A stretch of 10,591 nucleotides of DNA from Octopus sinensis (Eukaryota): positions 1 through 10,591 of the forward strand of contig NW_021827381.1 in assembly GCF_006345805.1 (NCBI RefSeq). Reading direction: 5' to 3'. Below, in pieces: positions 1-10,591 of the stretch. The notes below the pieces were generated by a model. It ran no database searches, had not been told where the DNA came from, and saw only the letters and a list, made by a program, of their open reading frames with translations. The translations under genes were made by a program, and so were the position numbers. Within the stretch, counting starts at the first letter, position 1; each line of letters opens with the position of its first letter.

Positions 1-82
1 ATCTATCTATCTATCTATCTCTCTATCTATCTATCTATCTCTCTCTCTATCTATCTATCTATCTATCTCTCTCTCTCTTCTA

Positions 83-113
<31 letters not shown>

Positions 114-135
114 CTCTCTCTCTCTCTCTATCTAT
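1..135. repeat. Compound (ATCT)n/(CT)n microsatellite
   Basis: Direct tandem ATCT and CT units from the window start. Confidence 0.95.
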
Positions 136-181
136 CAATACTTCTGTATCTTTATGTATGCATACATGTATGTATAATAAT

Positions 182-244
182 AAAGAAGCCCATCAATTAT
201 GTATGTGTATGTATGTATGTGTGTGTGTGCGTTTGTGTGTCTGT
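182..244 (+). mobile_element. SINE-A internal fragment (end of head plus microsatellite), inverted relative to the neighbouring copy
   Basis: AAAGAAGCCCATC...(TG)n...GTTTGTGTGTCTGT matches the internal part of the plus-strand copy at 2615-3018. Confidence 0.7.
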
Positions 245-385
245 CTTTGTAAGCCCAGTGTTATTCTATCTGTCTCTTTTGCTGAACCACTAAGTTACGA
301 GGACGTAAAAACACCAGCATTGGTTGTCAAGCAATGTTGGGGGTACAAACACACACACACATACACATACACACACATACACATA

Positions 386-416
<31 letters not shown>

Positions 417-581
417 CGATGGGCTTCTTTCAGTTTCTGTCTACCAAAATCACTCACAAGCCATTGGTCAGCCCGATGCTATAGTAGAAGACACTTGCCC
501 AAGGTACCACGCAGTGGGACTGAACCCGGAACCATGTGGTTGGAAAGCAAGCTACTTACCACACAGCCGCTCCTGCACCTA
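245..581 (-). mobile_element. SINE-A copy lacking its 3' tail
   Basis: Aligns to the full copy at 6887-7287 from CTTTGTAAGCCCAGT to CTCCTGCACCTA. tRNA-like A/B boxes lie on the minus strand. Confidence 0.9.
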
Positions 582-771
582 TATATACATATATATACAT
601 ATATACGACAGGCTTTCTTTCAGTTTCCGTCTACCAAATCCACTCACAAGGCTTTGGTCAGCCCGAGGCTATAGGAGAAGACACTTGCCCAAGGTGCCAC
701 GCAGTGGGACTGAACCCGGAACCATGTGGTTGGTAAGCAAGCTACTTACCACACACCCACTCCTGCGCCTA
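582..771 (-). mobile_element. Second SINE-A 5' half (tRNA-like head up to the internal TA repeat) in tandem
   Basis: CGACAGGCTTTCTTTCAG...CTCCTGCGCCTA repeats 417-581 directly, joined through a TA/TACA tract. Confidence 0.9.
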
Positions 772-859
772 CATTTAAATTTAATTGTAGCTGATTTAAT
801 TTTTAAAACTTAATGAAATAAAATTCAGAAAATAAAATTTTTCTTTTCATTATTTCTTA

Positions 860-914
860 TTTTGTGCTTGTATTAAGCCTCCAAATGTGTCAGATCATTT
901 TGGTCCACCTTGTA
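860..914 (-). mobile_element. Possible solitary Tc1/mariner-type terminal inverted repeat
   Basis: Minus strand reads TA-CAAGGTGGACCAAAATGATCTGA, similar to the CAGGGTGTCCCAAAAGGCACTGA end at 7421 and abutting TA. No partner end is seen in the window. Confidence 0.4.
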
Positions 915-1510
915 TATAACTTTGAGTGCAGAAGAGGGGTCCTGGAAACTGAACCAGTGTCAGCCGGATAACAAGAGGAAAAAGCAATAATACTAAAAAA
1001 AAAAAAAAAGACTTTACAAGCAGCAGCCACGGATGGAAATTGCCAGAACAGCAAAGAGATGGATTCTCTTTTGGTGCTCAAAGATGAGGCAGTTGGCTCC
1101 TGTTACCTAGGTGACCTAATTAGCGTTTGCAGCTTGGTGGTGGGGGAGGGATGTTGTGGAAGGAGGCTGAATGGGGACCCCCCCTCCGCCATCGCCATGA
1201 AAGCGTAATAAAGACGGTGGTGGTGTCGGGGTGGGGGAGTTATTATCTCCTTTGCTGTTAAGAAAGGGGGCCCTTTTTTTGTTTCTTCCTAGTCGCCAAA
1301 TTGAAGGAAGCTTCTATGGACCCTTTTGAACAGACTTGTGGGGGGAGGGGGGGTGAATAAAAGGTTGAGAATATGGCGGTGGGGGGTGGGGGGTGAAGGA
1401 AATGTGTATCGTGGTGGTGGAAATATTATCCGGGGTGGGGGGTGATTTGGTGATTAAGGAATAATGTTGAAGTCTCCGGAACGGGTTGGGTTGCTGGGAT
1501 GCATTTTTTC

Positions 1511-1534
1511 GGGGGTGGGGTGGGGGTGGGGGGG
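1511..1534 (+). other. Canonical G-quadruplex-forming motif within a G-rich tract (about 1135-1550)
   Basis: GGGGG-T-GGGG-T-GGGGG-T-GGGGGGG: four G-runs with 1-nt loops. Sequence potential only. Confidence 0.6.
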
Positions 1535-1659
1535 AGCTGGCTGGGGGTGTTGATCACACTGCGAGGCATGTTAGAGAGGCAAGTAGCTTTCAACCGAAGC
1601 CCCTAAACAGAGAATTTGCTAGATGGGGACTGAAAGAAGCTTGTTGCACATGTATTATG

Positions 1660-1711
1660 ACAACAACAACAGTAACAACAACAACAACAACAACAACAAT
1701 AATAATGATAA
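1660..1711. repeat. (AAC)n then (AAT)n microsatellite abutting a SINE tail
   Basis: Direct tandem trinucleotides. Confidence 0.9.
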
Positions 1712-1949
1712 TACTCTTTTACTCTTTTACTTGTTTCAGTCATTTGACTGCGGCCATGCTGGAGCACCGCCTTTAGTCGACAAATCGACCCCAGGACTTA
1801 TTCTTTACAAGCTAGTACTTATTCTATCATCTATCTTTCTTTGCCGAACCGCTAAGTTACGGGGACGTAAACCACACCAACATCGGTTGTCAAGTGTTTT
1901 GGGGGGACAACACAGACACAAACATATATATATATTATAAATATATATA

Positions 1950-2115
1950 CTTTATTTAAAGCAGCAGAAAATTCAACAAATCAGCAACGAGAAAACTCAG
2001 AGTAACAGGTTTGTTGAATTTCTGCTGCTTTAAATAAGCATATTACTCTACCACACTGGTATTTGAGTACTCTTTTTTTTTTCCACCTTGTTTCACAATT
2101 TATGTGTTTACTCCG
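1950..2115 (+). mobile_element. Probable Penelope-like element terminal fragment with a short inverted duplication
   Basis: Inverted arms 1950-1980 and 2010-2038, the 3' half of a hammerhead-like motif (GAAAACTCAGAGTAACAG), and (TA)n on both sides. The family assignment is inference. Confidence 0.5.
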
Positions 2116-2143
2116 TACATATATATATATATATATATATATA

Positions 2144-2358
2144 AAGTTAATCCAAACAAGAAAGCACAAAAAAACACACACGCGAGGACTGGAACAAATA
2201 TAGTATTATTGGACGCTCAGGAAAGAAGGAGGGTTTAAGTTTCGAGCGGGCTCTTCGTCGGAAACATAGAGAAGGAAAGATCCAGAGAAGGGAAGATGGA
2301 GGGAAAAGAATTGCCAACGGTACACACGCGGTCACATCTTGAAAGACCGGAAGGAAAA
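2144..2358 (-). mobile_element. Probable Penelope-like element terminal fragment
   Basis: Bounded by (TA)n on both sides and contains a minimal type I hammerhead-like fold on the minus strand, as is typical of PLE termini. Confidence 0.55.
2233..2265 (-). ncRNA. Degenerate minimal type I hammerhead ribozyme motif
   Basis: Minus strand GUUU-CCGACGA-A-GAG(CCCG)CUC-GAAA-C-UU-AAAC: stem I GUUU/AAAC, CYGANGA core, stem II, GAAA. Stem III is nearly absent. Confidence 0.55.
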
Positions 2359-2370
2359 TATATATATATG

Positions 2371-2404
<34 letters not shown>

Positions 2405-2614
2405 CATATATACAAATCTACTCACAAGGCTTTGGTCGGATCGAGGCTATAGTAGAAGACACTTGCCCAAGGTACCACGCAGTTAGACTGAATCCGGAGC
2501 CATGTGGTTGGTAAGCAAGCTACTTACCACAGAGTCACTTAATAATAATAATAATAAAAAGAAGAAGAAAAAGAATAATAATAATATATACAACTATGAT
2601 GAAGAAGAAAAAAA

Positions 2615-3018
2615 GGCTGTGCGGTAAGTAGCTTGTTTACCAAGCACATGGTTCCGGTTCAGTCCCACTGCGTGGCCATTGGACAAGTGTCTTCTACTAT
2701 AGCCTCGGGCCGACCAAAGCCTTGTGAGGGATTTGGTAGACGGAAACTGAAAGAATCCCGTTCGTATATATATATATATATGTATGTGTGTGTATGTGTT
2801 TGTGTGTGGTCTGTGTTTGTCGCCCCTAGCATTGCTTGACAACCGATGCTGGTGTGTTTATGTCCCCATAACTTAGCGGTTCGGCAAAAAGAGACCGATA
2901 GAATAAGTGCTGGGCTTCCAAAAGAATAAGTCCCGGGGTCGAGTTGGTCGATTAAAGGCGGTGCTCCAGCATGGCCGCAGTCAAATGACTGAAACAAGGC
3001 AAAAAAAAAAAAAAGAGT
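2615..3018 (+). mobile_element. SINE-A near-full-length copy (first ~13 nt missing)
   Basis: A-box remnant GGCTGTGCGG, B-box GGTTCAGTCCC (2656-2666), internal TA/TG repeat, and 3' hairpins GCGGTGCTCCAGCATGGCCGC and CAGTCA-AA-TGACTG before an A-rich tail. Confidence 0.92.
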
Positions 3019-3330
3019 TACCGTGACGATCTCTAGTGGGAAATACGACGGTTGTGGTCAATGGGGAGAGTGGACATGGTACCAATAATAATTGGTGCAC
3101 TTGGAAGTACCAGCACTAAACTACCAGCATGGTTGAAAAAGATTGGTGCAAGTGTGGAGGTAGAACATCTACAAGAATCAGCATTGCTTGGAACTGCAAG
3201 AACTCTTCGCAGGGTTCTTGAAGCATGACCAGAAGACAAGTGTCACCTTAGTCCGCTGGCTTTGGACAGCTGACACTTTCCATCGACACCCAGCAAAATA
3301 AGAAGTGAATTTTTAACACATAATAAAAAT
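3019..3330 (+). mobile_element. 3' remnant of an RLE-type non-LTR retrotransposon (R4/Dong-like)
   Basis: 3037-3228 translates as WEIRRLWSMGRVDMVPIIIGALGSTSTKLPAWLKKIGASVEVEHLQESALLGTARTLRRVLEA*, resembling the C-terminus of a restriction-like endonuclease domain. The 3' UTR has an AAGTGTCA/TGACACTT stem and a TAA-rich end. Confidence 0.75.
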
Positions 3331-3525
3331 AATTATTTCTACTATAGGCCTAATAAAATTTGGGGAAGGGGAGTGGTCGATTACATCGACCCCAGTATTT
3401 CACTGGTATCTAATTTATCGACCCTGAAAGGATGAAAGGCAAAGTCGACCTTGATGAAATTTGAATCCAGAATGTAGCGATGGGCGAAATACCGCTAAGT
3501 ATTTTATTCAGCATGCTAATGTTTG
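3328..3525 (-). mobile_element. SINE-B (second tRNA-derived family)
   Basis: Minus strand shows a degenerate B-box (GGATTCAAATT), then GCCTTTCATCCTTTCAGGGTCGATAAATT (Deu/Nin-like central domain by recollection). The core recurs at 5719-5736 and 6668-6731. Confidence 0.75.
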
Positions 3526-3611
3526 TAATGCTCAATTAAATGGAGTTGCATGAAACGATCGTACTGCATCACCCCTGGACATCCTTGTTGCTTATTTTGA
3601 TTGATATATAT

Positions 3612-4042
3612 ATACTCTTTACTCCTTTACTCTTTTACTTGTTTCAGTCATTTGACTGCAGCCATGCTGGAGCACCGCCTTTAGTCGAGCAAATCGACCC
3701 CGGGACTTATTCTTTGTAAGCCCAGTACTTATTCTATCGGTCTCTTTTGCCGAACCGCTAAGTGACGGGGACGTAAATGCGCCAGCATCGGTTGTCAAAC
3801 AATGCTAGAGGGACAAACACAGACACACAAACACACGCACGCATATATTATATATATATATATAGATATATATAGATATACGACGGGCTTCTTTCAGTTT
3901 CCGTCTACCAAATCCACTCACAAGCATTGGTCAGCCCGGGGCTATAGCAGAAGACACTTGCCCAAGATGCCACGCAGTGGACTGAACCCGGAACCATGCG
4001 GGTTGGTAAGCAAGCTACTTACCACACAGCCCTCCACTCCTA
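3612..4042 (-). mobile_element. SINE-A full-length copy inserted in (TA)n
   Basis: Colinear with other copies, with three tandem tail units (ACTCTTTT-like) and TA repeats on both flanks. Confidence 0.93.
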
Positions 4043-4162
4043 TATTATATATATATATATATATATAGCAATAATAAATCTCTGAACGAGATGTAAACAG
4101 TAACCGCTCGACAACGCAAAGTATACTAGCCATCTCAATAGGGCTAACCACTAAGGGTGGGT

Positions 4163-4350
4163 GTTACTGTAGCTTTTAGCCCCAGGAGATCAACGTCTCC
4201 AGCTGGCTTTAGGCACACTTTCTGTCATCCCTCTCTTGTCAACCTAAGTGATACGCACGGACTGCAGTTCTAGGTATTTGCCTGTCTTCGGCGTACGGCA
4301 ATCACCAGTTCTCGATGAAAGGGAGACCTGTTTGCAAATACTTAATGTTT
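4163..4350 (-). mobile_element. Uncharacterised retroelement 3' end
   Basis: Minus strand ends CAGCTGGAGACGTTGATCTCCTGGGGCTAA, sharing motifs with the element at 4694-4805. The 5' boundary is uncertain. Confidence 0.35.
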
Positions 4351-4387
4351 TTCTAGTATACATATATATATATATGTTTGTATGTAT

Positions 4388-4458
4388 GGATCAAAACAGT
4401 TTGATTTGAATTTGTTGGTACTCTGAGTTTCAAGCATGATGCTAGTCTTCAAACATTG
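4388..4458 (-). mobile_element. Short probable Penelope-like remnant with a degenerate hammerhead-like motif
   Basis: Minus strand UUGAAGA-CU-AGCA(UCA)UGCU-U-GAAA-CUC-A-GAG-UA, embedded between microsatellites. Confidence 0.4.
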
Positions 4459-4497
4459 ATATATATCTGTATATGGATGTATGTATATATATGTATA

Positions 4498-4532
<35 letters not shown>

Positions 4533-4612
4533 GTATGTGTGTGTATGTGTGTGTGCATATATATGGTGTGTGTGTATGTATATGTGTGTATATATATATA
4601 TTATGTTTGAGT
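4459..4612. repeat. Compound (TA)/(TG)/(TATG) microsatellite
   Basis: Direct tandem units. Confidence 0.93.
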
Positions 4613-4693
4613 GTGTTTATATCCTATCTCTGTTACATTTTTTTGTTCGTTAACTACATTATCTAATGTATAGGAGTTAGTATTAGTGGTTAT

Positions 4694-4805
4694 AGTTGTT
4701 GCTTAGCCCCAGGTCAGTCCTGATCCAGACAGACCTATGATCAAAGACGTTCCAGCTGTGACCATCCCATCTATAATTCAGTCCTTGTGTATCTAGGACT
4801 ACATT
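4694..4805 (-). mobile_element. 3' end of a SINE/LINE with an (AAC)-type tail
   Basis: Minus strand ...CAGCTGGAACGTCTTTGATCATAGGTCTG...GACCTGGGGCTAAGCAACAAC has an AGGTC/GACCT stem followed by a short simple-repeat tail. Confidence 0.5.
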
Positions 4806-4824
4806 CTCTAGTGCATTGTATAGT

Positions 4825-4918
4825 AGGTAGTAGTAGTAGTGGCTTTAGGCATTATCATTGCTGTTGTTGACAGATCAGCTGTAGTTGCACAACAACAGTA
4901 CCACCACCACCACCACCG

Positions 4919-4949
<31 letters not shown>

Positions 4950-4966
4950 CGACAACGACAATAACA
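4825..4966. repeat. Trinucleotide cluster (TAG)n, (ACC)n, (AAC/GAC)n
   Basis: Direct tandem units. Confidence 0.88.
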
Positions 4967-5234
4967 CTGAATATATAAGCAACAAAAAAAAACAGACAAA
5001 AAATCCTATCTGTGTGTGTCGTCCGTGACCTGAGATGACATTCACCCGAAATATCTTGTTGAGGAATGTTTCCACCTTGTAAAACGGGTGGCGACAGAGG
5101 GGGAGGTGAGAGAGAGAGAGGGGGAGATTGGGGGAGGGGGGGCGGAGAAAAAGCCACAGAGAGCAGACTGTCATATTTTGACCTACTTTGCTGTAGTTTT
5201 TTTTTTTCTGCAGTGGCCACCACCTCTGAATTTC

Positions 5235-5290
5235 TGTGTATGTGTTTGTGTTGCGTGTGTGTGTGTGTTTATATATATACATATATATAT

Positions 5291-5371
<81 letters not shown>

Positions 5372-5401
5372 TATTATAAATATATATACATATATATATA
5401 T

Positions 5402-5441
<40 letters not shown>

Positions 5442-5525
5442 CATATCTTATCTATATACTGTATGTATGTATGTATGTATATATGTATGTAGTATGTATT
5501 ATATATGTATATATATGTATGTATG
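5235..5525. repeat. Long compound (TA)n/(TACA)n/(TATG)n microsatellite
   Basis: About 290 bp of tandem units. Confidence 0.96.
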
Positions 5526-5540
5526 AATTTATTATATTAT

Positions 5541-5615
5541 GTTGTCAAGCGAGTTGGGCGGGGCAACCACGACACACAAACATATATACACACACACGTA
5601 CATACATATATATAT
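5541..5615 (-). mobile_element. Degenerate SINE-A internal fragment
   Basis: GTTGTCAAGCGAGTTGGG...GACACACAAACATATAT resembles the body/microsatellite junction of SINE-A. Confidence 0.55.
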
Positions 5616-5718
5616 TTGTTCCCAGGCAGATCCTCCACCAGCTGGTTCCTGGGGCAGCCTGCACCCTGTTTATATTGCAAGCAAGGGAGCAAACCCCCAC
5701 CATCCTCTAGCAGGCAAA

Positions 5719-5799
5719 GGGGTCGATGTAATCAACTTAATCCCTTTGTCTGTCCTTGTTTGTCCCCTCTATGTTTAACCACCTGTGGGCAACAAAAAA
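5719..5799 (+). mobile_element. SINE-B 3' fragment with an alternative tail
   Basis: GGGGTCGATGTAATCAAC matches the reverse complement of 3376-3393 at 17/18 positions. The downstream tail differs. Confidence 0.6.
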
Positions 5800-5852
5800 T
5801 GTATATATGTATATATATATGTATGTGTATATATAAATGTATGTATATATAT

Positions 5853-6607
5853 GGCATCGCAGAGAACAAAAGTTGTTGTGTACCTGCTTGTGTACTGACA
5901 TCGCTTCTCTACTCATGTGAGACATGGACTCTGTACAAACGTCAGGTCAGGGTCCTTGAACGTTTTTCATCAGAGATGTCTCAGACACATTCTCAATGTT
6001 GGCTGGACCTCAAATTCCAGACACACAGATCCTGAGGACAGGCTGATATCTTGAGTCTGAGGTGATGTACACAAGCACCGGTTGCATAACATGTTACCTG
6101 AGCACTCTCGAAAGTGACCTGACATAATCTTCTTTAATCTTCGCCGATTTGCTGCCAATTCAAAGAATGGAGGATAGAAGGATTCCTAAGCAGATGCTCT
6201 ATGGAGAACTTGTGAATGGAAGGAGACTCTGACAGAAACCAAGGCTACGATTTAAGGACTGTGTCAAGTCCTCATTAAAGGCTTTTGATATGCAGGACAC
6301 TGACTGGGAGAACAATGCCTGTCATTGCCACAGATGGAAGAAGCAGGTTAAGGAGGGGATCAACACTTTTGGGAGAGCACGTATCCAGCATGAAGAACTT
6401 AAGCGAGCTGTGCGAAAGCGCACGGCTCGTATAGTGAATGGGGAAAGCTTGGTCTGCAATGTTTGCAGTCGTGTATGCTTGTCAGGAGCAGGGCTCATTA
6501 GCCGCCACGGAGCCGCAAATGCAAAATATAAGTTAATCCTAGAGCGCACAATGTTCCTGAAGGTCGGCAATGGTCTTCCTCGGTCACGAGTGGACGGCCA
6601 TCATCAT
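5853..6607 (+). mobile_element. 5'-truncated, decayed RTE-clade LINE (post-RT C-terminus, terminal zinc-finger-like motif, 3' UTR, (CAT)3 tail)
   Basis: With frameshifts corrected it reads ACVLTSLLYSCETWTLY...FHQRCLRHIL...RMEDRRIPKQMLYGEL...KPRLRFKDCVK...CNVCSRVCLSGAGLIS. Candidate TSD ATGTATGTATATATAT at 5837-5852 and 6606-6621. Confidence 0.9.
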
Positions 6608-6667
6608 GTATGTATATATATATGTGTGTGTGTTGATTATTTGAAGAATAATCTCCCTCAATGCCAA

Positions 6668-6731
6668 GTTGATTAGATCGACCCATTACACAGCTGGTAA
6701 TTAATTTATCGACCCCAAACGGATGAAAGGG
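6668..6731 (-). mobile_element. SINE-B core fragment
   Basis: GTTGATTAGATCGACCC...TTTATCGACCCCAAACGGATGAAAGG aligns to 3376-3439. Confidence 0.65.
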
Positions 6732-6886
6732 AAAAAATTATATATATATATAAATTAGAGAAGAACCACCTTTTATCATTTCAATAATGAAAAATTAAAT
6801 TATACCATCTAGATTTCCGGCTGCTTTTGTCTGTCTTCCGGGATGGACACCTGTCTGCTAGAAATAGCAAGAATTCATCCCATCTC

Positions 6887-7287
6887 ATACTCTTTTACTT
6901 GTTTCAGTCATTTGACTGCGGCCATGCTGGAGCACCGCCTTTAATCGAACAACTCGACCCCGGGACTTATTCTTTTGTAAGCCCAGTACTTATTCTATCG
7001 GTCTCTTTTGCCGAACCGCTAAGTAACGGGGACACAAACACACCAGCATCGGTTGTCAAGCAATGCTAGGGGGACAAACACAGACACACAAACACACACA
7101 CATATATATATATACATATATACGACGGGCTTCTTTCAGTTTCCTTCTACCAAATCCACTCACAAGGCTTTGGTCGGCCCGAGGCTATAGCAGAAGACAC
7201 TTGCCCAAGGTGCCACACACTGGGACTGGACCCGGAACCATGTGGTTGGTAAGCAAGCTACTTACCACACAGCCACCCCTGTGCCTA
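6887..7287 (-). mobile_element. SINE-A full-length copy (~400 bp)
   Basis: Complete head, internal microsatellite, body and tail. Used as the in-window reference copy. Confidence 0.95.
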
Positions 7288-7535
7288 CATATAAAAAATT
7301 AGTGACAGTCAGTCACAACAAGCAAAGAAACTAGTTCAGAAAATCTCTGTTAAGGATGAAAGCAGGAACAATAAATAGCGATAAGTAACCTTTATTGCAC
7401 AATCAATAAGGCTGTTTATCCAGGGTGTCCCAAAAGGCACTGATGCGTTTCAATTTTTTCTGACTTCCCAAACTTCACAAATAAATGCATGAAATTTTGA
7501 TACAATATAAATGACATAATGGAATTTAATATGCA

Positions 7536-8356
7536 TGGCAAAGGAGTTGCTGTGTGGTAAGTAGCTTGCTTACCAACCACAATGTTCCGGGTTCAGTCCC
7601 ACTGCGTGGCATCTTGGGCAAGTGTCTGCTGCTATAGCCCCAGGCCGACCAATGCCTTGTGAATGGATTTTGTAGACGGAAACTGAAAGAAGCCCATCGA
7701 TAATATATATATATAATATATATTATATACTCTCTTTTACATGTTTCAGTCATTTGACTGCGGCTATGCTGGAGCACCACCTTTAGTCGAGCAAATCAAC
7801 CCCGGGACTTATCCTTTTGTAAGCCCAGTACTTATTCTATCAGTCGGTCTCCTTTGCCGACCGCTAAGTGATGGGGACGTAAACACACCAGCATCGGTTG
7901 TCATGCAATGCTAGGGGGACAAACACACACACACATATATATATAAATACATATATATGACAGGCTTCTTTCAGTTTCCATCTACCAAATCCATTCACAA
8001 GGCATTGGTCGGCCTGGGGCTATAGCAGAAGACACTTGTCCAAGATGCCACGCAGTGGGACTGAACGCGCAACCATGTGGTTGGTAAGCAAGCTACTTAC
8101 CACACAGCCACTCCTGCGCCTATATATATATATATGTATGTATATATTTTTGTGTGACTGTTTGTCATTCCACCATTGCTTGGCAACTGATGTTGGTATG
8201 TTTATGTTTCCGTAACTTAGCAGTTCAGCAAAAGAGACCAATAAAATAAGTACTAGGCTTACGAAGAATATTTCCTGGGGTGAATTTGTTCAACTAAAGG
8301 CGGTGCTCCAGCATGGCCGCAGTCAAAGGACTGAAAGATTTGAAAGAATAAAAGAA
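7536..8356 (+). mobile_element. SINE-A copy in the left arm, interrupted by a nested SINE
   Basis: Head 7536-7700, body/tail 8123-8356, variant tail GGACTGAAAGATTTGAAAGAATAAAAGAA. Confidence 0.88.
7727..8122 (-). mobile_element. Full-length SINE-A nested in the internal (TA)n of the left-arm SINE
   Basis: Complete copy flanked by TA repeats, in opposite orientation to its host and absent from the right arm. Confidence 0.92.
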
Positions 8357-8376
8357 CAAATCCAAATTCTGCAACA

Positions 8377-8585
8377 CTATTTCATCACATTATAAATGGC
8401 ATCGCTTAAGTGGTGGCCATTTTCGGCTTTGCACACCCCGGGCTCTTTTCAGATCTTGCACCATAACACCCTCAAAAGTTTCGGACCCCATATCTCTGAT
8501 TCCTCTATTGATGTTCTCCTTCAGTTGCACCAGGGTCTCTGGTTTGTTGACGTAAACCCTCTCTTTCTGGTATCCACGATATAGA
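8377..8585 (-). pseudogene. Tc1/mariner transposase C-terminal remnant (inverted copy)
   Basis: GYQKERVYVNKPETLVQLKENINRGIRDMGSETFEGVMVQDLKRAR, then a +1 shift into an AENGHHLSDAI-type ending. Resembles the WGYLKxxVY...GxHLxDxIF terminus of DDxxD transposases. Confidence 0.8.
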
Positions 8586-8587
8586 CC

Positions 8588-8908
8588 TTTTGGCACCCGG
8601 CCATTCAAAACAGACCCCACACAGGGTTCCAGCAAGACGGGGCAACTGGTCACACCACAAGAGAAACAATGCAGTTTCTATGGCCATCCTTAGGGGAGAG
8701 AGAATAATGCCCCACTACAGCAATATCAACTGACCCTCATACACACAACTGAATAATGTTCTCCTGGTGCAACTGAAGGAGAAATCAGAGAAATCGGGGT
8801 CCGAAACTCTTAAGGGTGTTATGGTACAAGTTTTGGAAAGAGCCCGGGGTGTGTGAAGCCGAAAATGGCCACCACTTAAGCGATGCCATTTTTCCTGTGA
8901 TGAAATAG
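8588..8908 (+). pseudogene. Internally deleted Tc1/mariner transposase remnant
   Basis: FWHPAIQNRPHTGFQQDGATGHTTRETMQFL contains the second catalytic Asp motif (GAC 8636-8638). It is followed by LVQLKE...VMVQVLERAR/VCEAENGHHLSDAIFPVMK* (TAG 8906-8908). The third-Asp region is missing. Confidence 0.82.
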
Positions 8909-8924
8909 TGTTGCAGAATTTGGC

Positions 8925-9162
8925 TTTATTCTTTTATTCTTTCAAATCTTTCAGTCCTTTGACTGCGGCCATGCTGGAGCACTGCCTTTAGTCGAGCAAA
9001 TCGACCCCAGGATTTATTCTTTGTAAGCCTAGTATTTATTCTATTGGACAATTTTGCCGAAGTGCTAAATTATGAGGGGACATAAATACACCAACATCGG
9101 TTGTCGAGCAATGGTTGGGGGACAAAAACAGACACACAAACACATTGATACATACACACAAC

Positions 9163-9199
<37 letters not shown>

Positions 9200-9383
9200 A
9201 CACACACATATATATAAACGACAGGCTTCTTTCAGTTTCCGTCTACCAAATCCACTCACAAGGCTTTGGTCAGCTCGAGGCTACGGTACAAGACACTTGT
9301 CCAAGATGCCACGCAGTGGGACTGAACCCAGAACCATTTGGTTGGTAAGCAAGCTACTTACCACACAGCCACTCCTTTGCCAT
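8925..9383 (-). mobile_element. SINE-A copy in the right arm
   Basis: Same variant tail and same 5' junction (CATGGCAAAGGAG) as the left-arm copy. Confidence 0.9.
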
Positions 9384-9523
9384 GTATAGTAATTTCCATT
9401 ATGTCATTTATATTGTACCAAAATTTCATGCATTTATTTGCGAAGTTAAGGAAGTTATTAAAAATTGAAACGCATCAGTGCCTTTTGAGACACCCTGTAT
9501 GACACACACACACATGTGTATAT

Positions 9524-9741
9524 ATTCTTCTATTCTTTTACTCGCTTCAGACATTTGACTGCAGCCATGTTGGAGCACCACCTTTTAGTCAAGCAAATCG
9601 ACCCCAGGACTTATTCTTTGTAAGCCTAGTACTTATTCTATCGGTCTCTTTTGCCGAACCGCTAAGTTACAGGGACATAAACACACCAGCATCGGTTGTC
9701 AAGCAATGTTTGGGGGGACAAACACAGACACACAAATATAC

Positions 9742-9776
<35 letters not shown>

Positions 9777-9948
9777 ATATATACAACAGGCTTCTTTTAG
9801 TTTCCGTCTACCAAATCCACTCAAAAGGCTTTGGTCGGTCCAAGGCTATAGTTGAAGACACTTGCCCAAGATGCCACGCAGTGGGACTGAACCTGGAACC
9901 ATGTGGTTAGTAAGCAAGTTACTTACCACACAACCACTCCTATGCCTA
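9524..9948 (-). mobile_element. SINE-A full-length copy
   Basis: Colinear with 6887-7287 and ends GCCTA at 9948. Confidence 0.92.
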
Positions 9949-10032
9949 GAGCCACAAAAACTGCGAAAAAAATCTCTTCTTTTGAGATTGGATTTGATCC
10001 CTCATGATTCACTCGATCTCCATATATGGTGG

Positions 10033-10411
10033 GTGGAGGCGCAATGGCCCAGTGGTTAGGGCAGCGGACTCGCGGTCGTAGGATCGTGGTTTCGATTCCC
10101 AGACCGGGCGTTGTGAGTGTGTTTATTGAGCGAAAAACACCTAAAAGCTCCACGAGGCTCCGGCAGGGGATGGTGGTGACCCCTGCTGTACTCTTTCACC
10201 ACAACTTTCTCTAACTCTTACTTCCTGTTTCTGTTGTACCTGTATTTCAAGGGGCCGGCCTGTCACTCTCTGTGTCACTCTGATATCCCCGAGAACTACG
10301 TAAGGGTACACGTGTCTGTGGAGTGCTCAGCCACTTATACGTTAATTTTATGAGCAGGCTGTTCCGTTGATTCGGATCAACCGGAACCCTCGTCGTAACC
10401 GACGGAGTGCT
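10033..10411 (+). mobile_element. SINE-C, full-length tRNA-derived SINE with a perfect 14-bp TSD
   Basis: A-box TGGCCCAGTGG (10045-10055), B-box GTTTCGATTCC (10089-10099), two 3' stem-loops, and TSD TCCATATATGGTGG at 10019-10032 and 10412-10425. Confidence 0.92.
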
Positions 10412-10450
10412 TCCATATATGGTGGATATATAAACTGGGCTAATTTAATT

Positions 10451-10591
10451 ATTCGTCTCCCATACACAGAATGTTTATCTTCCTTGGGCATGGACATATT
10501 GAAGCCTAGATGTCTGGCAACAGCCTTGGGAGACACCCACAAGATTATCCACCATCTTTCCTACAACAACCTTAGGTACCTTTTGGAATTC
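10451..10591 (+). mobile_element. CR1-like LINE ORF2 C-terminal remnant, running off the window end
   Basis: IRLPYTECLSSLGMDILKPRCLATALGDTHKIIHH resembles the CR1 motif pattern LPYEERLxxLGLxxLxxRRLxxDLxxTYKII. Confidence 0.65.

Follow-up and report, generated by a model that had tools for sequence, protein, structure and literature searches.

How one and the same retroposon comes to lie at the same position in both arms of a fold-back transposon is the question raised by positions 7421-9497 of the stretch of Octopus sinensis DNA analysed here (contig NW_021827381.1, positions 1 to 10,591; the whole stretch of 10,591 nucleotides is called the window). Each of the two long inverted arms of this element carries a copy of a short interspersed element (SINE), here named SINE-A, and an earlier sequence-only reading had proposed a composite in which an RNA polymerase III (Pol III) retroposon became part of the terminal repeats and spreads by cut-and-paste. 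We arrive at another answer, to which we give a probability of roughly 60%: the locus is a dead copy of an old, dispersed fold-back derivative of a Tc1/mariner transposon, in which a SINE was later copied from one arm to the other.

The inverted arrangement itself was borne out. Local alignment pairs 7418-8534 with 9500-8763 in inverted orientation, inverted-repeat detection returns arms 293 nt long (88% complementarity) and 277 nt long (90%), and on both sides an arm is composed of a terminal repeat, a SINE at the identical site and the 3' end of a transposase gene, with 85-92% identity. The terminal repeat with its untranslated region (UTR) is 90.3% identical between the arms (Jukes-Cantor, JC, distance 0.10), the SINE head 87.4% (0.14), the SINE tail 85.1% (0.17) and the transposase 3' end 91.6% (0.09). 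About half to two-thirds of the mismatches are transitions, and private indels are also present. The 27-nt terminus CAGGGTGTCYCAAAAGGCACTGATGCG occurs exactly twice in the window, at 7421 on the plus strand and at 9497 on the minus strand, with none expected from 200 shuffles.

Read from the left, the element begins with the 3' UTR and terminal inverted repeat of the left arm (7421-7536, minus strand; terminus at 7421, CAGGGTGTCCCAAAAGG...). The left SINE-A follows on the plus strand in two parts: its head, with box A/B-like motifs, and the start of its central (TA)n tract (7537-7730), then its central repeats and tail (8121-8359), which ends in the arm-specific variant ...GGACTGAAAGATTTGAAAGAATAAAAGAACAA. 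Between these parts lies SINE-B (7731-8120, minus strand), a full-length SINE that arrived later within the (TA)n tract and has no counterpart in the right arm. The left arm continues with a frameshifted C-terminal remnant of the transposase (GYQKERVYVNKPETLVQLKENINRGIRDMGSETFEGVMVQDLKRAR / VCKAENGHHLSDAIY) and UTR (8360-8576, minus strand) and ends in a degenerate terminus-like motif (8577-8599, minus strand), beyond which direct sequence comparison places the head-to-head junction or linker (8600-8624). The right arm comprises a transposase remnant that extends from (W)FQQDGATGHTTRETMQFLWPSLGER... to the C-terminus, with UTR (8625-8925, plus strand), the right SINE-A (8926-9381, minus strand), which agrees with the left copy in site, orientation relative to the arm, and head and tail variants, and the 3' UTR and terminal inverted repeat (9382-9497, plus strand; terminus at 9497). 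Two stretches of the left arm are missing from the right arm, 51 bp with the gap ending at 8763 and 13 bp near 8783. Owing to the SINE-B nested in its SINE-A, the left arm exceeds the right in length by about 380 bp.

One part of the earlier description has to be replaced. The 228 bp between the arms had been described as a spacer, whereas tblastn with relatives places FQQDGATGHTTRETMQFLWPSLGER on the plus strand at 8627-8701, running on into the right arm, and GYQKERVYVNKPETL on the minus strand at 8575-8535, continuing the left arm. The centre is therefore transposase sequence of both arms, meeting head-to-head at about 8600-8625. That the spacer might simply be the left copy running on was ruled out by the same search, which puts the right copy on the plus strand. 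Both termini in the window derive from a 3' end and the inverted arms are long, and the evidence supports both outer ends being 3' ends of one transposon family.

The family was identified from the transposase reading-frame pieces, which were searched apart and never read through a stop. A search of 1.84 billion representative proteins with an 87-amino-acid piece (8393-8653, minus strand) gave 31 relatives at E<=0.001. A profile of close relatives takes in 1758 proteins; many of the matches are about 360 amino acids long with an N-terminal DUF4817 helix-turn-helix, and they are mostly from arthropods. The catalytic domains of Sleeping Beauty (5cr4, 1.4e-8) and SETMAR (3f2k, 7.5e-4) are matched by P0041, a full-length relative whose third catalytic residue lies 41 residues after the second, as counted via the SETMAR alignment at the third position. 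Pfam gave no match for the three transposase pieces. The parent is a Tc1/mariner superfamily transposon of about 1.3 kb that targets TA and ends in CAGGGTGTCCCAAAAG, with terminal inverted repeats at both ends, a transposase homologous to the DDE/D catalytic domain and full-length relatives with DD41D spacing. This spacing is that of the Visitor/rosa family (bioRxiv 10.1101/2022.10.13.512200; PMC5490172). The remnants in the window retain the motifs FQQDGA and GYLK.RVY.NKPETL. Both copies carry stops, frameshifts and deletions and have no intact reading frame, and the element is not autonomous; the N-terminal two thirds of the transposase are missing from the window and the third catalytic residue is present in neither arm.

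Other members of the family (L-numbers denote contigs outside the window) range from L006, a full-length copy of about 1.33 kb that is degenerate, lies in a (TA)n tract and has terminal repeats of about 110-130 bp, to deletion derivatives of a roughly 555-bp type (L002, L011, L015) and of another type (L001, L016). In L006 (27-1353; the same locus is found in L007-L009) the 3'-type sequence of about 110 nt stands at both ends, while the derivatives of about 555 bp have a different 5' end in which only about 25-45 nt are shared, and the family seems to have two end architectures. An initial view that the natural 5' and 3' ends share only about 20 nt was dropped, as they share about 110 nt in L006. 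A distant relative, L010 (116-1472 of JAAUYE010010604.1), combines long transposase-like stretches of open reading frame (ORF) with terminal repeats of 29 bp and clean TA duplications. Over the first 23 nt (CAGGGTGTCCCAAAAGTCACTGA) its terminus agrees with that of the window element; conservation over this distance makes the stretch probably a transposase-binding site.

The head-to-head backbone occurs at more than one locus. The Logan contig L012 (SRR11869390) aligns over its positions 300-674 with the window minus strand from 8739 to 8363 at 70% identity, and L013 (SRR11869384) over its positions 72-394 with the minus strand from 8739 to 8418 at 72% identity; L014 (SRR11869391) is the same locus as L013 from another run. 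Both alignments are uninterrupted across the head-to-head junction, and a short variant segment beside it is common to the window, L012 and L013. The flanks, on the other hand, differ between all three. Both arms are visible in L012 and one in L013, and a SINE is seen in none of them. L012 and L013/L014 thus combine the same internal junction with different flanks. The sequence-only reading had allowed that a single-copy structure would be a one-off local inverted duplication; for the backbone this does not apply, since it is multi-copy. From these comparisons the backbone appears to be an old, dispersed, non-autonomous Tc1/mariner derivative present in multiple copies.

Its inner ends give some indication of how it arose. 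The terminus-like motif CGGGTG--CCAAAAGGTC at 8577-8599 (minus strand) reaches a score that was attained in 15 of 2000 shuffles; at the homologous place L012 has AAAAGCCACATTGATG (41 of 2000), and in L013 the motif was not significant in the shuffle test. It is probably a remnant of the left element's own 5' terminal repeat. A candidate reading in which this inner end encodes 'NWP' was dropped, a degenerate terminus being more likely. In the right arm, (W)FQQDGA is preceded by 13 nt (8611-8623) similar to the 5' leader found ahead of WFQQDGA in the derivatives L002 and L015. The terminus remnant and the leader resemblance together suggest that two different deletion derivatives lay head-to-head, and the remnant is suggestive support for a two-element origin. 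In the course that we favour, a short derivative would have come to lie beside or inside another in opposite orientation, after which the two outer 3' ends would have been used. Two internally deleted elements joined in this way would have 3' ends with terminal repeats on both outer sides, and the unit could in principle be moved in trans by the transposase of the family. Alternatively, abortive gap repair with template switching may have produced the backbone (PMC4877112, PMC3814204, PMC8277862). A separate case is the MEGAHIT contig L003, whose start (1-87) is an inverted copy of its own transposase 3' end (about 385-470) with a junction unlike that of the window; it represents either another kind of fold-back or an assembly artefact of the palindromic type.

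We then compared the SINE site with the other members of the family. Comparison with relatives sets the limits of SINE-A at 7537-8359 (including SINE-B) and 8926-9381, in each case 116 nt inside the terminus. The transposase 3' end runs directly into the terminal repeat in L001-L006, L011, L012 (both arms), L013, L015 and L016, the database proteins P0003 and P0004 read through the SINE site, and a SINE was found in 0 of the 12 other 3' ends examined. The left terminal repeat and UTR are 75-82% identical by blastn to the 3' ends of L001, L002, L004, L005, L006, L011 and L012, and L015 and L016 are 75-77% identical to the left arm over a wider region. Because the same head-to-head backbone occurs without the SINE and all 12 other 3' ends lack it, the SINE is read as a later passenger and is not part of the family design. 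Nor is it part of the terminal repeats, as had been proposed: it lies inboard of the repeat, which it neither replaces nor extends. Another member of the family has received a retroposon of its own, in that a poly(A) run, with a different tRNA-like sequence (GGTCCAGAGTTCTAATCCC) after it, cuts short the 3' terminal repeat of L016 at about 640-748.

These results weigh on the proposal that the SINE-bearing fold-back is a mobile composite family, in which a Pol III retroposon within the long inverted arms is spread by cut-and-paste. Both terminal repeats of the window element are complete, the arms end exactly at the termini with TA/TC flanks, and since the SINE-less backbone is dispersed, a SINE-bearing copy would in principle be mobilisable. 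However, a second copy with the SINE did not turn up in the searchable collections, which barely sample the source genome. A 54-amino-acid ORF across the junction of terminal repeat and SINE had no match among 5.8 billion proteins, again a collection that hardly samples the source genome, and the exact junction pattern had no match in the JGI metagenome contigs, a result that is uninformative for the source genome. The pattern of the terminus alone matched once in the same contigs, in the distant L010, which is without a SINE. Placed inboard, the SINE is also not needed for the repeat. Together with the 12 SINE-less 3' ends, this makes a mobile composite unlikely, if the best placed of the alternatives.

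A later copying step is supported by the relation between the two arms. If the head-to-head fusion is older than the split between the window copy and L012/L013, the arms within one copy should differ from each other at least as much as the copies differ between themselves. This expectation fits L012, whose arms are 70.6% identical over 109 bp and 55% in a wider alignment. It fails in the window, where the arms are 91% identical to each other and 71-74% identical to the arms of L012 and L013. In a maximum-likelihood tree the two window arms are sisters with support of 99/99, and a tree in which arms of the same type form a clade can be rejected (delta lnL 20.9; p-AU 0.038 in the approximately unbiased, AU, test). 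A-to-I RNA hyper-editing as the source of the long branches of L012 and L013 was rejected, the substitution spectrum showing no excess of A>G. The duplication of the SINE thus looks like an event separate from the creation of the fold-back, namely a later homogenisation of the arms.

Several points weigh against this interpretation. The contigs L012 and L013 are short and have about 70% identity to the window, and the junction homology amounts to some 320-380 aligned bases. Statistical support for the terminus-like motif is weak (p about 0.01-0.02; L013 falls short of significance), the AU test is only moderately significant and the tree is mostly unresolved. To some extent, the long branches of the Logan copies could be due to another species or subfamily instead of to age. 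Alignment of the inner parts of the window arms with each other was not possible, and therefore no boundary of a conversion tract is directly visible. Finally, no copy with the SINE in one arm only was seen.

The same evidence bears on a de novo local event, in which the 5' half of a SINE-bearing element would have been replaced by its inverted 3' half through abortive gap repair or template switching, so that the resemblance to L012 and L013 would be coincidental. Abortive gap repair and microhomology-mediated rearrangement are established ways in which non-autonomous DNA transposons arise (PMC4877112 citing Rubin and Levy 1997; PMC3814204; PMC8277862), and an origin of this kind agrees with the window arms being each other's closest relatives. 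It is disfavoured because independent events would not reproduce both the junction and the adjacent variant segment, which L012 and L013/L014 share with the window along the colinear bases mentioned above. We consider it improbable, slightly more so than the mobile composite.

Turning to the SINE, the family is represented in the 10.6-kb window by 10 heads and 8 tails. A copy is about 420 bp long, starts with the common 5' end GGCGCAGGAGTGGCTGTGTGGTAAG, contains a central (CA)n/(TA)n microsatellite and has a tail that ends ...GTCAAATGACTGAAACAAGTAAAAGAG(TA); in having many dispersed copies, about 100-500 bp in length, that begin alike at the 5' end, the family shows what characterises a SINE. 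Box A- and B-like motifs (TGGCTGTGTGG and GGTTCAGTCCC) were recognised by eye in the head. ARAGORN made no tRNA call in the window, and Rfam, run on the window in E-value mode, returned nothing at threshold, the sub-threshold matches being microRNA-like and lying on microsatellites and inverted SINE heads. With no tRNA call from either program, we can only infer that the SINE is tRNA-derived and transcribed by Pol III. SINE sequence strings had no match in the literature. Comparison of the empty site in L001 and L013 (...TTTGACT(A/G)(G/A)TGCAT...) with the filled site (...TTGGAT[SINE]ATGCAT...) leaves a target-site repeat of at most 2 nt.

The two SINE-A copies share more than their position. 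Both begin with GGCAAAGGAG immediately after the transposon sequence ...CAT, and the shared junction CATGGCAAAGGAG pointed out in the sequence-only reading is, more exactly, 3 nt of transposon (CAT) plus the SINE 5' end, a variant of the family's GGCGCAGGAG. The tail variant GGACTGAAAGATTTGAAAGAATAAAAGAA occurs in both and is missing from the six other tails in the window, just as that reading had claimed. Relative to the consensus of the window's other copies, the two have 13 derived bases in common, 7 of them in no other copy, besides 28 and 20 private changes, respectively. Its conclusion that one insertion was duplicated together with the arm is supported by the common site, by the 13 derived bases and by the equal identity of the arms, and the two copies are accordingly read as descendants of a single insertion. 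SINE integration does have target preferences, and a window with 10 heads in 10.6 kb is saturated, which would suit two independent insertions of one SINE subfamily, one at the same site of each arm. Yet the two copies match to the nucleotide in their insertion point and agree in their orientation relative to the arm, the 13 derived bases are shared, and the non-SINE arm sequence is equally similar (about 91%), so that we hold two separate insertions to be very improbable. An assembly artefact such as a palindromic chimera of reads deserves hardly any credence: palindromic contigs do arise, and L003 may be one, but the arms differ by 9-15% and by private indels, one of them alone holds a whole extra SINE, and the same head-to-head junction appears in independently assembled contigs of other samples.

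On the favoured reading of a fold-back derivative with a SINE copied between its arms, the history of the locus would comprise four steps, the order of which we infer. SINE-A, of about 420 bp, would first have entered one arm between the transposase stop or UTR and the terminal repeat, at the observed distance from the terminus. The outer part of this arm, that is the terminal repeat, the SINE and about 170 bp of the transposase 3' end, would then have been copied onto the other arm, likely by arm-to-arm gene conversion or by templated repair of a double-strand break between the inverted repeats. Subsequently the arms would have diverged by 9-15%, the right arm losing 51 and 13 bp and the left TA becoming TC. 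SINE-B, which differs from the SINE consensus at 19 of 346 sites, would have entered the left arm later. In a repeat calibration for Octopus vulgaris, a JC distance of 0.09 corresponds to about 25 million years (PMC13282606); the homogenisation would be of the order of 10-20 million years old if the rate in the source genome resembles that of O. vulgaris.

The element is flanked by TC on the left (7419-7420), the place of the expected TA target-site duplication, and by TA on the right (9498-9499). The left TC had been named as the weak point of the structure. The observation is confirmed, but its weight is minor, because eight other loci (L001, L002, L004, L005, L010, L011, L013 and L015) end in ...CCCTG or a close variant followed by TA; L012, whose terminus is degenerate, was left out of this count. 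The best reading of the left TC is a TA that has mutated; with divergence at about 10%, one A>C substitution is enough to explain it. The expected empty site of the element is ...GGCTGTTTA joined directly to TGACACAC.... At 9500-9530 a (TG)n tract and the 3' tail of a further SINE (9523-9948) adjoin the right terminus, so that the element is located, or inserted, immediately next to an older SINE.

Elsewhere in the window, further SINE copies lie at 246-779, 1712-1949, 2413-3010, 3620-4035 and 6880-7293, in addition to the one at 9523-9948, and some are truncated or abutting (heads at 560 and 750). At 2413-2765 two inverted SINE heads around an AAT/GAA-rich spacer form a hairpin, which gives the sub-threshold Rfam matches 'MIR5048' and 'MIR4208' (62.6 bits against a threshold of 160). 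These were rejected as microRNA genes, since the inverted SINE heads explain them. The two most GC-rich non-SINE stretches, 3030-3240 and 5900-6700, contain ORFs of 58-128 amino acids (for example ...IIGALGSTSTKLPAWLKKIG...LQESALLGTARTLRRVL). A Pfam search of these ORFs gave no match, and they may be remains of other retroelements.

Rather than a novel type of mobile element, the locus is ordinary layered junk that has one instructive twist, and its value lies mainly in annotation and method. What appears to be a retroposon within the ends of a transposon resolves into three ordinary processes laid over one another, namely the head-to-head fusion of deletion derivatives, nested SINE insertion and the homogenisation of inverted arms. 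It would provide a small example, open to dating, of how arm-to-arm conversion copies an insertion within a transposon, and it documents a fold-back derivative of a DD41D-type Tc1/mariner family. Should the SINE-bearing unit prove to exist in several copies, we would have a genuine instance of a retroposon that hitch-hikes on a cut-and-paste element and so gains a second mode of spread. If such a mobile composite existed and its inverted arms of about 700 bp were transcribed, long hairpin RNAs would result.

Among known systems, the nearest in family is DD41D Visitor/rosa, with which the element shares a flanking TA, short conserved termini and, in full-length relatives, the helix-turn-helix and the 41-residue spacing. 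Unlike Visitor/rosa, the window copy has no intact frame, and its assignment is by residue spacing in P0041, not by clade. Non-autonomous derivatives and MITEs (miniature transposable elements with inverted repeats) of the Tc1/mariner superfamily have been described, among them products of microhomology-mediated miniaturisation in Aedes (PMC3814204) and the Bari and mariner MITEs (PMC4877112). As in these, the window family has deletion derivatives that keep their termini and lose coding sequence, whereas here two derivatives are fused head-to-head, so that both outer ends are 3' ends and the inverted arms measure hundreds of bases.

Fold-back elements are known from Drosophila (FB and Galileo), and composite or macro-transposons moved from the outer ends of two neighbours are represented by bacterial Tn5 and Tn10 and by maize Ac/Ds. 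The window element resembles both in its long inverted arms, asymmetric centre, two equivalent ends and occurrence at several loci. It differs from them in that its arms have no tandem subrepeats, its transposase belongs to another family and its mobility is deduced from dispersed copies only. Pack-TIRs are DNA transposons that contain foreign sequence, and most single-copy cases have been attributed to template switching or gap filling and not to transposition (PMC8277862). They too hold foreign DNA between terminal repeats, but the passenger here is a retroposon that would have inserted by its own route and then been duplicated between the arms, not captured host sequence. The large palindromes, for example those of the human Y chromosome, undergo gene conversion between their arms. 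As in these palindromes, the arms of the window element are far more alike than their age predicts, and what inserts into one arm can reach the other by copying; in contrast to them, its arms measure hundreds of bases instead of kilobases to megabases, the setting is a transposon, and the conversion is deduced from the similarity of the arms.

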